Below, in pieces: positions 17,691-23,040 of a stretch of DNA of 64,000 bases (position 1 is the stretch's first letter; every line of letters starts with the position of its first letter). Position numbers and translations under genes: made by a program. This DNA comes from Guillardia theta CCMP2712 (lineage: Eukaryota; Protista; Cryptophyta). The notes below the pieces were generated by a model. That model was not told where the DNA came from, did no database searches, and was given only the letters and a program-made list of their open reading frames with translations. The DNA is taken from NCBI RefSeq assembly GCF_000315625.1, contig NW_005434549.1:136004-200003 (forward strand), in the 5' to 3' direction.

Positions 17691-20119
17691 ATGTCCGCCA
17701 ACAACTCAGACAGCAACAGCAAGGACTTGGATGGCTCCATGGGCGATGCAGATACTGGGCAGGATGAGGCGGGAGGAGCAGGAAACAACAAGTACCGCAG
17801 GAGGAATGTAGAGAGACATCTTGCAGCGGAGAGGGATCGCAGGAAGGCTACGAAGAGCAAGCTGCAAGAGCTGGATGCCCTCCTACCAGACTCGTCGAGC
17901 GGGCCCAGAACACTGAATCAATGCTTGAAGGTGGCATGGGAGCATATTAACGGCATTGTCAAGGGAAAGCAGGCAGGTGGCAGCCAAGAGAACTCTCAAG
18001 CTGGAGAGAGGTCTGTCCTGTCCTCTGCGATGGAGGCAAGCCCGAATGTTGGGGTTGGGGTTCTGAACAGGGAGTGGAAGTTCGTGAGAGCGAATCAGGC
18101 ACTGACGAAGGCAGTGAGCAACGGCCAGCCCCTCCTCGGGGTCAGCCTCCTCTCGATCGTGAACCCCTCCGATTCTCAGCCACTGGCCGATCTGCTCTCG
18201 AAGCTGAGCAGGTCGACGAGCAACGGGGGGGATAAGGTATTCATCAACATTCGATTTGCCGCCAGGGCTGGGTCAGCGCTCGATTTCAATCGCTACTACA
18301 AGCTCGACATCGTTTCTGTCAACGTGAGACCGAATGAGAAGGTTCAAATCCTCCTCGTCTACTTCGGACCCTCCTCAAGGTATCCCAACGTCGGTCCTCA
18401 GCCTGCTCCCCGGCCGCAAGGCCTTAGCCGGGCGGAGGAGCTGGTGAACAAGATCCCGATACTGCAAGGACTGGATCCCATGACGTTGTTAGAGGTCCTT
18501 TCGATGGCGCAGACTGCAGTTCTCGGCCCGGGAACCACCATCATCAACGCCGGGTATCCCCCGGGCCCGATGTTCTTTCTCGAGTCTGGCAAGTGTGTGG
18601 TGCAAGTGCGAGGGCGGCAGGTTGCCATGCTGGACGCGGGGGACTGCTTCGGTGAGATCTCGCTGCTGTCAGCCGAGCCGAGGACGGCAGATGTCATCAC
18701 GCTGACCCAGAGCACCGTCTTGCAACTCCCCGCTGTCCTTTTCCTGCAATGCGCGCACTCCAACCCAGCGTTGATGGGTAGGCTCCAGAACCTTGCGAAC
18801 TCAAGGTTGCTGCGCGATTCGGGCTCCTGGAGCCACTCCACGGGGCTTCCGATCGGAATGGGCCCGGCGCTGCTCGGGGTTCCTTCCCGGCCGATGCAGA
18901 GCGGAGGGTTGCAACAGCTGCCGCAGCTCCCGGTCAAGGTTGAGGGCTCGCTGCAGTTCCAGCCAGGCGGTGCCCAGCCCTTATCTTTTGGCATGCAAGC
19001 GCAGGGAGGATCGTTTGACGTCAAGGCGACGCCTGAAGAAGCTCCGATGGCGCAGAGCAAGGCAGCTCCGAGCCAGCTGGGCGCGGAGCCGTTGAGCTCG
19101 TCGAGTAGCTGGAGTAACTCCCAGTCAGCTTCTCTGCAGCCATTTGGAAACCAACCTGAGGTTTCCAGCGAAGTGACCAGCCAAGGCCTCGTGAGCATGA
19201 TCGAGGCCGGAAGCAACTGGGGAGGGGGGGTCGTGAGGAGGAGCAGCGGGCAAGTGGCTAGGCAAGACTCCATCATTCAGCTCATCGGGGACATCGCAGG
19301 AGAGGCGTCCGAGCCGATCGCTGGGCCATGGGCGTCGGACTTTGCAGATGGCGTCCTCGATGGAGGGAGGAACAACCTGCACAATCGATCGCGCACAGCG
19401 ACGCCGGACGGAGCGCACAGGTCCATGTCATGGGACAGCTTCGTGCGGGGAGAGTGCGACTTTTCGCGCCACCTCGCTCCTGCATCTCCTACCTCCTCTC
19501 ACAAGGACGGGCACGGAGGACGATCGGAGCAACCTCCGATCACGACGGAGAGGTTGACTCGCTGCCAGATGATTTCGAGCTGCTCCCCGTCCTGCATCGC
19601 CGACATGGCCAGCAGGCTGCGGTCAGTCGTGGCGGAGGAAGGGGATGTTCTGGTGCACCAGGGGTCGCCAGGGCGGTCGCTCTTCTTCATAGAGCAGGGG
19701 ACGTGTCATGTGATCGTTAACGGGCTCGTCGTGAGGACGCTGGGGCCCGGCGAGTGCTTCGGTGAAATCTCTCTGATAATGACGGAGATGGCAACCGCGG
19801 AGGTACGTGTTGCAGGCTCCCCTGCCTCTGCCCTTGCCTCGTCCTCGAGTGCGATGCTGGCTCCTTGCGCTGGCATGCTCTCCACTCCTCACTCCTCTCC
19901 TCCTCGCTCGCGTTCTCGCTCGCACGTTGTTGACTGGTCGGGGATCAGGTCATAGCCATGGAGAAGTGCGAGCTGCTGGAGGTAACGTCGCTCCTCCTCC
20001 TCCTGCCCTTGTGTTGACCTTGCGTGCCTTCAGCTCCCTGCGCGGGACGTCTGGGTGCTGCTGCCCGAGTATCCTGACCTTTACGGGTTGCTGAAGCAGC
20101 AGGTGAGGAGCAGGAGCAA

Positions 20120-20156
<37 letters not shown>

Positions 20157-20834
20157 CGGGGGTTGGGGGGGGGGAGGAAGGATAGGTGCTGGGGATAAAC
20201 GTGGGGAAGAGAAACAGGAACGCTGACGGGCAGTCAGGCAATAGACAACATCAATAGGGCTGGGATCTGCGACCTCTCAGCCTGGGGGACATATCTCCCA
20301 AGACCTCGCCGGGGAGAGAGATTTTGAGAAGCTCTTGGCNNNNNNNNNNNNNNNNNNNNNNNNNNNNNNNNNNNNNNNNNNNNNNNNNNNNNNNNNNNNN
20401 NNNNNNNNNNNNNNNNNNNNNNNNNNNNNNNNNNNNNNNCCTCCCCTCCCCTCCCCTCCCCTCCCCTCCCTCCCCTCCCTCCCTCCCCTCCCCCTCCCTC
20501 CCCTCCCCTCCCTCCCCTCCCCTCCCTCCCCTCCCTCCCTCCCTCCCCCTCCTCCCTCCTCCCTCCCTCCCCTCCTCCTCCTCCCCTCCTCCCTCCCTCA
20601 TCCCTTCCTTCTCCTTCCGACTTTTTCCGTTCTCGTCACTCTCCTGTCCTTCTTTTGCCTTCCTCCTCTCACACCTGTTGCTCTGGTGCCAGTAACGGAT
20701 CCGCAGGGAGGACAAACGACGACGCTCGACTCCTTGATAACAGGGGTGAGAACGAGAAGGAGGGAGAGGAGGAGGGAGAAGTGATGCGTATCAGCACTAG
20801 GATCAGGATACGGATTAGAACTAGAACCAATGAC

Positions 20835-20869
<35 letters not shown>

Positions 20870-21377
20870 AATCAAGAGCAGGGGAGGGTTAGAGGCAGTA
20901 GCAGCAGGGTGGGAACTTTTATTTCAGTCTCACTTACGTCAAGGTGATGGAGCTTGACAAGATTCTCAACGAGGAGAACGATCTCGATAGAGCCAAGTCT
21001 TGCGTCGCAGACCTGCGGCCACTGCTGCAGATGCTGATGAGGAGCGGTTACAGGTGGGGCTAGTTGCTCGATCTCCCCCTGCCTCTCCTCGCGCGCAGCT
21101 CTCCTCTCCACCTTCTTCCTTGTTTCCCGTCTCTTCTCTCCTCCATCGCCTCTGACCGCTCCCTCTCTTTCTCTCTTCCCGTTCCTCTCCTCTTTCCCTC
21201 TCCTCTCCTCTCTTCTTCTCCCTCTCCTCTTTCCCTCTCTTCTCCTCTCTTCTTCTCCCTCTCCTCTCTTCCTCTCTTTCTGTCTTGTTGGCTCTGCCCG
21301 ACCCTGATCTCTCTACAGGCCAGAGCCTATCGCACCGGACGATACATGATAAAGTTTTCAGTTCCCTCGTTTTCTAA
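17691..21377 (+). CDS. bHLH-PAS transcription factor with two cyclic-nucleotide-binding (cNMP) domains
   Basis: Exon 1 (17691-19802) contains: bHLH RHLAAERDRRKATKSKLQELDALLP..LNQCLKVAWEHI; PAS-like AMEASPNVGVGVLNREWKFVRANQAL..LLGVSLLSIVNPSD; cNMP-1 with PBC FGEISLLSAEPRTADV; cNMP-2 GDVLVHQGSPGRSLFFIEQG..FGEISLIMTEMATAE. cNMP-2 is completed by exons 19949-19981 (VIAMEKCELLE) and 20034-20102 (LPARDVWVLLPEYPDLYGLL). Further exons cross the gap to a probable stop at 21375-21377 (3' end tentative). Confidence 0.85.
20340..20439. other. Assembly gap (100 N)
   Basis: Run of n followed by a (ccct)n tract. Confidence 1.
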
Positions 21378-21524
21378 TTCATCGCAGTTAATAATCAAGG
21401 TAGATCGGACTGGTCGCGTCCTCCTATCATACACCTCACCTCTGCTTCTGCTTCTCCTCTCCCTCCGCTCCGTCGCTCTCTCCATGCTCTCATGGCATCT
21501 CATCTCCTTTCTCCTCCTCCTTGC

Positions 21525-23040
21525 TCATGTGTTGTTCCGCTCCGATCTCGCAGAGTTCTCGCGGATCGACTGAAGTTTCTGCCGGTCCTGCTCGCGCAGG
21601 CCGAGCTCGTCCGGGGGTTCTAGAGACCATGCGGGCTCCTCGGCGAGAGCAAGATGATACAACCTGATCCGATGTCACTGAGAGGAGAGGAGAGAACAAG
21701 AGCAGAGGAGAGGAAAAGAAGAAGAGGGGGAAGAAGAAAGAGAATGGGGCCGGGGGAGGGGGGAGAAGATGGGAGAGGAGGAAGGATGAGGTAGAGTCAG
21801 ATATGTTGAGACGGAAAGCTAAGGCGCGAAGGAGAGCGATGAAGAGGGATTGGAGGACTGCCAGGGCGGGCGAACGAGGAAGGGGAGAGGAAGAAAAGGA
21901 GATACCCGTCATTGCCACAGTTGTAGACGTAGTACGTGTTGTCGATTATTGGCTTCCTCCCGCTATCCCATTTTACAGTGCACTGAAGACAGTGAAGAGA
22001 GGTGAAGTCAGAAGGAAGCTGCGAGAGGGAGCAAGGGCGGGGGGGGAGGGATGGATGGATGGATGGAGGGAGGGAGGGAGGGAGGGAGGGAGGGAGGGAG
22101 GAGAGGGAGGGAGGGAGGGATGGATGGAGGGAGGGAGGGAGGGAGGGACGGAGGGAGGGAGGAGGAGAGGGACGGAGGGAGGGAAGGAGGGAGGGAGGGA
22201 GGGAGGGAAACAGGCCGTAAATGACTTCACCATGCCCATATAAGCTTCTCTCCCATTGTAGACCACAGTACCGATCCCATCGTCCAGATAGTCAGTTCCA
22301 TGTTCCTTGTCCCACAATCGCAAATATTCCTTTCCCGCGTCGCTGTGCAGCATTAGGACAAGACATGAGGAGGAGGAGGAGGAGGAGGAGGAGGAGGAGG
22401 AGGAGGAGGAGGAGGAGGAGGGCTAAAAGACCTCAGCTTGACGCGCAGCCCACTTGTGATCTTGAAATCTCGTCCGAGGATCTACCGATCAAGTAAGAAT
22501 CAACCTTTCCCACCTTCACCCTTCTCACTTTCTCGCATGTTTCTGCTATCTGCGGGCTCCGGAAATGTTTTGCGTGATATTGGGCCTTGAGAGGAGAGAC
22601 TCAGCAGACGTGCGAGCGGGGTTGTAATGAATCAACTCATGCATCTCGTCCTCGTATCAGCATCAGACGTCAACGCACCTGGGAATGACAGTTCCTGGGC
22701 ATCATTACCAGCCCAGAGATATCTGAGTTCTGACCAGACGCTGGAAGTTGCGCACATGGGTGGCCGGGAATCAGCATGCCTGTAGAGGTCGTGTGAAAAT
22801 TCTAACATCTCATCATCCTCTGTTCTCTCAACGTCATCAATTCTTCTGTCTTTCCCCTTCCCTCCAATCATCTATGATCTTGTTCTCTTGTTCTCTTGTT
22901 CGCTTGTTCTCTTGTTCGCTTGTTCTCTTCTCCATCTCATGACTGTCTTCCATCATCTTCATCGTCTTCTCAGCATCCTCTCCTTGTCTCCCTCGCTTCT
23001 TCTCTTCTCTTAGCCTCATTTCTCTCTGCCGCCTCCATGG
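21525..23040 (-). CDS. Small multi-exon protein with a MIB/HERC2-like (SH3-fold) domain
   Basis: Spliced: ITSGLRVKL|SDAGKEYLRLWDKEHGTDYLDDGIGTVVYNG..VKWDSGRKPIIDNTYYVYNCGNDG|LYHLALA..RNNT* (stop 21525-21527). Resembles the MIB-HERC2 pattern G.RV..W..D.G.GTV..V.WD.G..Y..G..G.YDL. 5' end uncertain. Confidence 0.55.

Follow-up and report, generated by a model that had tools for sequence, protein, structure and literature searches.

A cryptophyte bHLH-PAS protein with three cyclic-nucleotide-binding domains, a candidate cyclic-nucleotide-responsive transcription factor of Guillardia theta

Introduction

The known eukaryotic effectors of cyclic nucleotides (cNMP) are PKA, PKG, Epac, the CNG/HCN channels and the Popeye proteins, and the known cAMP and cGMP signals reach the genes through kinases, for example PKA acting on CREB. 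The PKA regulatory subunits (PKA-R) combine a dimerisation/docking domain with tandem cyclic-nucleotide-binding (CNB) domains, and the PKG of Plasmodium holds one degenerate CNB beside functional ones. In the KCNH (EAG/hERG) channels, the PAS domain docks on the CNB-homology domain, which provides a precedent for PAS-CNB coupling. The cassette of these channels is non-canonical (PMC2246266). A direct route from cNMP to DNA binding has been documented so far in bacteria only, in the CRP family, and a 2007 survey of CNB families reported DNA-binding fusions among prokaryotes only (PMC2246266). Algal bHLH-PAS proteins were described together with RITMO1 (bHLH1a) of Phaeodactylum as single-PAS proteins with short C-terminal extensions, and the same paper lists a bHLH-PAS protein of G. 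theta (PMC6600994).

Here, a stretch of 64,000 nucleotides of the Guillardia theta genome (the window) was analysed. The locus at 17691-21349 of the plus strand is a nuclear gene, expressed and spliced as a single transcription unit. In the encoded protein, an N-terminal bHLH and one PAS domain are followed by CNB-1, a linker rich in Q, P and S, a conserved module of 80 residues, CNB-2, CNB-3 and, at the C terminus, a helix. The animal class II bHLH-PAS proteins (ARNT, ARNT2 and BMAL1) gave the best profile and structural matches and share the H-E-R basic region, the HLH and the PAS fold next to it; however, the sequence identity is only about 15-20%, and the G. theta protein has one PAS, a CNB in the position of PAS-B and about 740 further residues with two more CNBs. 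With RITMO1, it shares the bHLH, the single PAS and an origin in a secondary-plastid alga, whereas its C-terminal extension comprises about 740 residues and three CNBs, of which the descriptions of RITMO1-like proteins mention none. In bacterial CRP/CAP, a cNMP-binding domain is likewise covalently joined to a dimeric DNA-binding domain, but that part is a winged helix-turn-helix not homologous to the bHLH, and the order is reversed, the putative DNA-binding domain of the G. theta protein being N-terminal. The CNB-2/CNB-3 tandem resembles those of PKG and PKA-R, whereas Pfam found neither a kinase nor an RIIa domain in the full protein, in which HLH, PAS and cNMP_binding were the only families found. 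The KCNH channels also combine a PAS with a CNB-type domain; however, they are membrane channels without a DNA-binding domain, whereas the G. theta protein has a bHLH. The aureochromes of stramenopile algae are one-component sensor transcription factors too, but with a LOV photoreceptor as sensor, a bZIP as DNA-binding domain and no CNB.

Results

Gene structure and transcripts

The ORF at 17691-19955 (plus strand, 754 codons) is real, and an in-frame stop is located 10 codons 5' of its start codon, the ATG at 17691. Blastn analysis showed that two transcript contigs (L001 and L002) matched the gene at 100% with GT..AG junctions, and the transcript-based model yielded a protein of 969 residues. 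The features of the locus are listed in Table 1.

Table 1. Features of the G. theta locus, in window coordinates
Feature	Start	End	Strand	Evidence
5' UTR in L001/L002	17570	17690	+	Blastn, 100% from the first transcript base
Coding exon 1, 704 codons: bHLH, PAS, CNB-1, linker, conserved module, first two thirds of CNB-2	17691	19802	+	ORF; 100% transcript match; GT donor at 19803
bHLH, residues 35-95, basic region RRRNVERHLAAERDRRK with H-E-R	17793	17975	+	Pfam HLH, profile matches, AF2 helices
Single PAS domain, residues ~113-228	18027	18374	+	AF2 topology, Foldseek, PAS_4 in paralog
CNB-1, residues ~246-378, cassette G321-E322...R331-T332-A333 (GEISLLSAEPRTA)	18426	18824	+	Pfam; Foldseek; cassette listing
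Q/P/S-rich linker, poorly conserved, residues 379-519	18825	19247	+	Alignment A4; pN 0.19
Highly conserved 80-residue module, residues 520-600, conserved T-P and S-P sites	19248	19490	+	Alignment A4; pN 0.016
CNB-2, exon-1 part, residues ~620-704, Ala701 in Arg position (GEISLIMTEMATA)	19548	19802	+	Pfam stretch 648-725; cassette listing
Coding exon 2, 11 codons (VIAMEKCELLE), within CNB-2	19949	19981	+	Transcript alignment, GT..AG
Coding exon 3, 23 codons, end of CNB-2	20034	20102	+	Transcript alignment, GT..AG
Coding exon 4, broken off by assembly gap	20238	20339	+	Transcript alignment
Assembly gap (Ns) inside coding region, covering residues ~773-909, nearly all of CNB-3	20340	20439		Transcript versus assembly
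Coding micro-exon, 13 codons, GGQTTTLDSLITG	20707	20745	+	Transcript alignment, AG acceptor and GT donor
Coding exon, conserved C-terminal helix	20944	21053	+	Transcript alignment, GT..AG; conserved in alignment A4
Last coding exon, TGA at 21347-21349, then 3' UTR	21319	21349	+	Transcript alignment

An earlier reading of the sequence alone (the sequence-only reading) had placed the bHLH, PAS, CNB-1, linker and most of CNB-2 in one exon and had argued that the fusion is no splicing artefact. The ORF and the 100% transcript match located all of these parts within exon 1, and the fusion was found again in the paralog and the orthologs; the fusion is therefore not an artefact of splicing. The boundaries given by that reading needed revision, since exon 1 ends at 19802 instead of at the ORF stop, two micro-exons (coding exons 2 and 3) finish CNB-2, and the coding sequence stops at 21349 rather than reaching 21377. 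The junction of exon 2 was also seen in a partly unspliced transcript of Hanusia. A first intron with its donor at 19807 and its acceptor at 19956 was ruled out by the transcript junction 19802|19949. The long spliced 3' tail of the transcript contigs was rejected as a 3' UTR, since CT..AC at the ends of its introns assigns it to a convergent minus-strand gene, with which L001 and L002 are chimeric at the 3' end.

Both flanks of the assembly gap matched one transcript contig at 100% or nearly so, in the same order and on the same strand. Positions 2440-2849 of the mRNA (410 nt) had no counterpart in the window or in the rest of the assembly. Because the flanks share one mRNA and these 410 nt lack a counterpart, the gap breaks into an exon and far exceeds 100 nt in length, with 410 nt or more of the mRNA concealed in it. 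In reality it probably measures about 1 kb; in the paralog, the corresponding region extends over about 940 nt and contains several micro-exons. In the final 100 nt 5' of the gap, within exon 4, two small indel discrepancies between the assembly and the mRNA were observed. CNB-3 of the 969-residue protein is readable from the mRNA only and not from the genome, and it brings to three the number of cNMP domains, which had previously been counted as two.

The bHLH and PAS domains

The Pfam HLH family scored 19.7 bits (E 7.6e-4) in the 754-aa ORF searched as a single sequence, just under the cut-off of 20.7 bits, and 24.3 bits in a six-frame genome scan, above this cut-off. The AF2 model showed a helix (residues 32-64), a loop and a second helix (residues 75-94), the HLH part of the models being of low confidence (pLDDT about 50-57). 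In the HMM alignment, the H-E-R of RRRNVERHLAAERDRRK, which had been proposed as the signature of the basic region, aligned with the H-E-R of ARNT. ARNT2, ARNT and BMAL1 made up 14 of the 15 top matches of the N-terminal profile, collinear over the bHLH and PAS-A (E 0.003-0.05), and MITF was also among the profile matches to the bHLH.

A PAS fold was located directly C-terminal of the bHLH. Pfam PAS_4 gave an E value of 0.22 in the 754-aa ORF and of 3e-4 in the paralog, and the AF2 model contained five strands and helices in PAS order (pLDDT ~66-89). The best 50 PDB matches of the N-terminal model in Foldseek were all animal bHLH-PAS proteins (HIF/ARNT/NPAS/AHR/CLOCK-BMAL1, E about 3e-6), and the PAS domain by itself reached a TM of about 0.7 against animal bHLH-PAS structures. 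The nearest protein language-model cluster was a diatom HLH+PAS family (score 0.93, 175 shared features). Only one PAS was present, in place of the two repeats (PAS-A and PAS-B) of the animal family, and CNB-1 begins at about residue 246. Support for both folds came from HMMs, profiles and structures alike, and the bHLH, PAS and CNB folds are as named here.

The CNB domains

The cNMP_binding family of Pfam (PF00027) matched the 754-aa ORF in two stretches (1e-29) and the full protein in three (1e-52), and the beta-barrel fold was found as well, in line with the domain calls of the sequence-only reading. CNB-1 superposed on the CNBDs of HCN and MloK1 with an rmsd of 1.3-1.6 Å over ~130 residues (Foldseek), and the best PDB sequence matches of the CNB-2/CNB-3 tandem were Plasmodium PKG (6.5e-25) and PKA-RI. 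The cassettes had been read correctly, CNB-1 having the canonical Gly-Glu and Arg-Thr and CNB-2 lacking the Arg. The cassette of CNB-3 (G836 E837 ... R846 T847 V848) is canonical. The Arg of the phosphate-binding cassette (PBC) was missing from CNB-2 in every relative, and the Gly-Glu and Arg-Thr of CNB-1 and CNB-3 were kept exactly in Guillardia, Hanusia and the paralog.

A cGMP preference had been linked to the Thr that follows the Arg. This argument is weak: the structures nearest to CNB-1 are HCN domains, mostly solved with cAMP, and the Thr is therefore not diagnostic. The proposed CRP-like logic holds as an analogy and fails as homology, because the CNB domains belong to the eukaryotic PKG / PKA-R / HCN type. 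Neither HTH_Crp nor any other HTH family was detected in the protein by Pfam at E up to 1, and its layout differs from that of CRP/FNR.

The linker and the conserved module

Among the large segments, the linker had the highest pN; it may serve as an activation or spacer region. In the module of residues 520-600, 18 columns of alignment A4 were invariant even in the metagenome relative. The module matched no Pfam family, and the Atlas offered no usable match for it.

Relatives, selection and genome context

The G. theta paralog (P0003) on contig C9 lies at an ungapped locus and encodes the same domain order, including CNB-3 and the C-terminal helix; it is annotated by NCBI merely as a 164-aa fragment. 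Because of this fragment and of the gap that hides part of the gene in the window, annotation-based domain surveys would miss the architecture. An independent transcript of Hanusia phi encodes a full-length ortholog of 970 aa with the same architecture, and an N-terminal fragment of the family was found in Cryptomonas curvata. The architecture is also conserved on the marine metagenome contig L018 of an uncultured eukaryote, where bHLH and PAS exons lie ~0.8-1.9 kb 5' of an ORF with three CNBs, on the same strand. Two further metagenome contigs (L021 and L022) carry the N-terminal module, and both end just past the PAS region. Two G. theta paralogs and relatives in other cryptophytes make up a small, well-delimited family.

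The basic region, with its H-E-R and flanking arginines, hardly varied between Guillardia, Cryptomonas and the metagenome relative. Non-synonymous divergence (pN) from Hanusia, a comparison in which synonymous sites are saturated, was low, with values of 0.044 for the bHLH, 0.063 for the PAS, 0.10 for CNB-1, 0.047 for CNB-2 and 0.015 for CNB-3. Every module is under strong purifying selection. When the word index was searched with the N-terminal region or a profile, it returned cryptophyte-type relatives only, from which absence elsewhere does not follow; likewise, a shape search of the ESM Atlas returned no large cluster joining HLH and cNMP domains, which does not imply that none exists. At least 78 matches to class III cyclase domains were found in the G. 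theta genome, and cNMP signalling is therefore abundant in this organism.

Discussion

No description of a bHLH-PAS-CNB architecture was found in a full-text literature search, in which the bHLH-PAS proteins mentioned for G. theta were described with one PAS and a short extension at the C terminus; this agrees with the sequence-only reading, to which no characterised protein of such architecture was known. We favour, with a probability of roughly 0.55, the interpretation that the G. theta protein is a sensor transcription factor, a bHLH-PAS protein with three CNBs that responds to cNMP by the following mechanism. The HLH-PAS part is predicted to dimerise the protein, and the bHLH, given its H-E-R, would bind an E-box of the CACGTG type. 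Cyclic AMP or cGMP would bind CNB-1 and CNB-3, the holders of Gly-Glu and Arg-Thr, and CNB-2, without the Arg in all relatives, may act as a structural or relay domain. Ligand binding would shift the hinge and lid helices of the CNBs and would thereby alter the packing of PAS and bHLH, the geometry of the dimer or the access of co-activators. The level of the second messenger would in this way be coupled directly to transcription, without a kinase.

A less probable reading, which nevertheless deserves weight, is that of a bHLH-PAS factor whose CNBs do not sense cAMP or cGMP and act instead as docking modules, between proteins or within the molecule, or bind another small ligand. The CNBHD of KCNH channels has an intrinsic ligand, PKA-R of trypanosomes binds nucleosides, and CooA binds haem. 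CNB folds with ligands other than cNMP are documented (PMC2246266; PMC10959531), and these cases speak for such a role, as does the absence of the PBC Arg from CNB-2 in all relatives. In the most distant relative, P0167, the canonical Arg was found in none of the three cassettes, and the conserved function of the family may therefore be something other than cNMP binding. However, the cassettes of CNB-1 and CNB-3 are exact in Guillardia, Hanusia and the paralog, CNB-3 shows the strongest constraint (pN 0.015), and CNB-1 superposes closely on cAMP- and cGMP-bound HCN/MloK1 domains, all of which argue for cNMP as the ligand.

It is rather improbable that the protein does not bind DNA and that its HLH-PAS part serves only for dimerisation and docking, as in PKA-R, within a regulator or buffer that binds cNMP in the cytoplasm. 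The borderline Pfam HLH score and the likeness of the CNB-2/CNB-3 tandem to those of PKG and PKA-R would fit this role, but a near-invariant basic region would not be expected if dimerisation alone mattered, and the profile and fold matches reach across the basic region of the DNA-binding proteins ARNT, BMAL1 and HIF. An artefact, either a chimeric transcript assembly or two adjacent genes joined by read-through or by the gap, is extremely unlikely: the chimeric 3' end of the transcript contigs and the gap inside the gene might suggest it, but one uninterrupted genomic exon holds the bHLH, PAS, CNB-1 and most of CNB-2, and the ungapped paralog and the independent Hanusia transcript have the same order, so that it is refuted as regards domain order.

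If the sensor transcription factor interpretation is true, a DNA-binding protein with its own cNMP sensors would provide a direct, kinase-free route to the genes. It would also mean that the bHLH-PAS scaffold, known from the clock, hypoxia and xenobiotic sensors of animals, can exchange PAS-B for a different sensor domain. A eukaryotic DNA-binding module switched by cNMP could serve synthetic biology in combination with light-activated cyclases. We propose tentatively, at somewhat less than even odds, that this family provides the first case of eukaryotic transcription factors under direct gating by a cyclic nucleotide. It would add a new class to the eukaryotic cNMP effectors PKA, PKG, Epac, the CNG/HCN channels and the Popeye proteins, in which a CNB would have replaced the ligand-binding PAS-B and the many cyclases of the alga would be wired directly to E-box promoters.

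Architecture of the protein

The bHLH-PAS-cNMP fusion proposed in the sequence-only reading was confirmed, with the number of cNMP-binding domains corrected from two to three (CNB-1, CNB-2 and CNB-3 from the N- to the C-terminus). On the plus strand, the reading frame was open without interruption for 754 codons (17691-19955), and an in-frame stop codon lay 10 codons 5' of the ATG at 17691. A protein search revealed that the product was UniRef100_A0A6U6BUJ7 of G. theta (P0001, 969 aa), which was also present in MMETSP and JGI. The first 704 residues were 100% identical to the open frame, which identifies the window as cryptophyte nuclear DNA, from G. theta; it formed part of contig C125 of the 87-Mb assembly. 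Transcript contigs L001 and L002, both of which encoded P0001, matched the window blockwise at 100% identity, and the intron ends were canonical GT..AG once the junctions had been resolved. In contigs from presumed RNA runs, the fraction of sampled words of the gene stretch that was found was 0.56-0.75 in five studies and 0.29 in one more run, compared with an exon share of about 0.7 by arithmetic, which indirectly supported expression of the gene.

Exons of the bHLH-PAS-CNB gene and position of its conserved module
Feature	Position	Strand	Remark
5' UTR	from 17570	+	transcript alignment
Exon 1	17691-19802	+	704 codons
Conserved module (residues 520-600)	19248-19490	+	80 residues
Exon 2	19949-19981	+	transcript alignment
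Exon 3	20034-20102	+	transcript alignment
Exon 4	20238-20339	+	enters N gap
Micro-exon	20707-20745	+	transcript alignment
Exon	20944-21053	+	transcript alignment
Last coding exon	21319-21349	+	TGA at 21347-21349

In Pfam, the HLH score of the single sequence was borderline (19.7 bits against a cut-off of 20.7), and 24.3 bits were reached in a six-frame scan of the genome. When an N-terminal profile built from six sequences was run against PDB sequences, ARNT2, ARNT and BMAL1 made up 14 of the 15 best, with alignments collinear from the basic region through to PAS-A and the H-E-R residues aligned. In the AF2 model of residues 30-235, a PAS fold of five strands came after two long helices (pLDDT 66-89), and all of the model's best 50 Foldseek matches in the PDB were animal bHLH-PAS proteins (HIF, ARNT, NPAS, AHR and CLOCK-BMAL1; E about 3e-6, many alignments about 190 columns long). 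By language-model comparison, the nearest clusters were those of ARNT and of a diatom HLH+PAS family, the latter at 0.93 with 175 features in common.

The full protein matched Pfam cNMP_binding at 1e-52 in three stretches. CNB-1, in the AF2 model of residues 1-400, superposed on the cNMP-binding domains of HCN and MloK1 at 1.3-1.6 Å over about 130 residues, and the CNB-2/3 tandem was nearest in sequence to Plasmodium PKG (6.5e-25), followed by PKA-RI and HCN. The domains are of the eukaryotic type and not of the CRP type. The phosphate-binding cassette was G321-E322...R331-T332-A333 in CNB-1 and G836-E837...R846-T847-V848 in CNB-3. CNB-2 carried A701 at the expected Arg position, as had been noted from the sequence, and CNB-2 likewise had no Arg there in the paralog, in the ortholog of Hanusia and in one metagenome relative. 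The "RT" of the cassette, previously read as a sign of cGMP preference, was not diagnostic, as the nearest structures came from HCN, and the majority of these had been solved with cAMP. In the most distant relative, P0167, none of the three CNB domains had the canonical Arg, and this is the chief reason for caution before cNMP binding is assumed throughout the family.

Assembly gap and 3' end

Alignment of L001 and L002 showed that the flanks of the N gap belonged to one mRNA, in the same order and on the same strand. A 410-nt part of this mRNA (L001 2440-2849, residues about 773-909) had no counterpart in the window or the whole assembly, where the paralog alone matched (76-83%). The gap thus cuts an exon and hides nearly all of CNB-3. 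The real gap size is probably near 1 kb, because the equivalent stretch of the paralog spanned about 940 nt in several micro-exons. Just before the gap, exon 4 contained two small indels between genome and mRNA (5 G versus 6 G in a homopolymer run; GAGAT versus GAGGCT), which would break the frame if the genome were read literally and which suggest poor assembly quality at this edge. The neighbouring introns (20440-20600 and 21080-21300, including 21227-21269) were filled with long CT-rich tracts of low complexity (CCTCCC type), and these probably caused the assembly to break.

Past the stop codon (21350-23024), L001 and L002 ran on with three introns (about 21664/21906, 21982/22231 and 22342/22432) ending in CT..AC, and thus in GT..AG when read from the minus strand. 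A gene on that strand therefore converges on the bHLH-PAS-CNB gene and overlaps its 3' end, and the two were merged by unstranded assembly. No Pfam match was found for its ORFs. Alternative splicing near 22587-22678 distinguished L001 from L002.

Conservation of the family

The architecture is real and conserved, and its range so far comprises cryptophyte algae and marine metagenome contigs. A G. theta paralog with the same domain order was located on the minus strand of contig C9 (about 495.1-499.4 kb). Its transcript product (P0003, 1013 aa) had a long poly-Q linker, its CNB-3 region was divided among many micro-exons, and its NCBI annotation consisted only of a partial 164-aa hypothetical protein (EKX52191.1). 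Hanusia phi had a full-length ortholog of 970 aa, Cryptomonas curvata an N-terminal fragment, and several marine metagenome contigs carried pieces of the gene; in one of 58 kb (L018), an ORF with three CNB domains was preceded on the same strand by bHLH and PAS exons, at a distance of about 0.8-1.9 kb.

Between G. theta and Hanusia, synonymous sites were saturated (pS 0.5-0.8) and non-synonymous divergence was low, with pN of 0.044 in the bHLH, 0.063 in PAS, 0.10 in CNB-1, 0.016 in the module at residues 520-600, 0.047 in CNB-2, 0.015 in CNB-3 and 0.19 in the Q/P/S linker. Low pN at saturated synonymous sites shows that every module is functional, the degenerate CNB-2 and the 520-600 module among them. 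The latter, between CNB-1 and CNB-2, ranked with the best-conserved regions of the protein: 18 of its columns did not vary even in a distantly related metagenome sequence, and the motifs RSRTATP and APASP were conserved. No Pfam or Atlas match to it was found.

Comparison with known systems and proposed mechanism

The protein combined the bHLH and PAS of bHLH-PAS proteins and, like RITMO1-type algal proteins, had one PAS. The latter are described as having "short C-terminal extensions" (PMC6600994; also a preprint), whereas the G. theta protein had a CNB-bearing extension of 740 residues. The description "CRP-like" held for the working logic proposed here, but not for membership of the CRP family, since the protein had no HTH, its domain order was reversed and its CNBs were of the eukaryotic type. 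The 2007 classification of the CNB family placed fusions to DNA-binding parts in prokaryotes only (PMC2246266). A full-text literature search found no description of the bHLH-PAS-CNB architecture. The public database name was only "cyclic nucleotide-binding domain-containing protein", and the architecture was apparently not recognised before.

Beyond the observed architecture, expression and conservation, we infer a mechanism in which the HLH-PAS part would dimerise and bind a CACGTG-type E-box. CNB-1, which began 17 residues past PAS at the position of the animal ligand-binding PAS-B, may bind cAMP or cGMP together with CNB-3, with CNB-2 as a putative relay or scaffold and the Q-rich linker as a putative activation region. 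The ligand would then shift the hinge and lid of the CNB domains and so alter PAS/bHLH packing or co-activator access. Structurally, PAS-CNB coupling has a precedent in KCNH channels, where PAS and CNBHD dock.

Dozens of CNB-domain matches were observed in the G. theta genome. The class III adenylyl/guanylyl cyclase domain had at least 78 matches, which makes the messenger plentiful. Cyclic-nucleotide signalling is strongly expanded in G. theta, and a transcription factor gated directly by cNMP is a plausible and testable candidate function for this protein.
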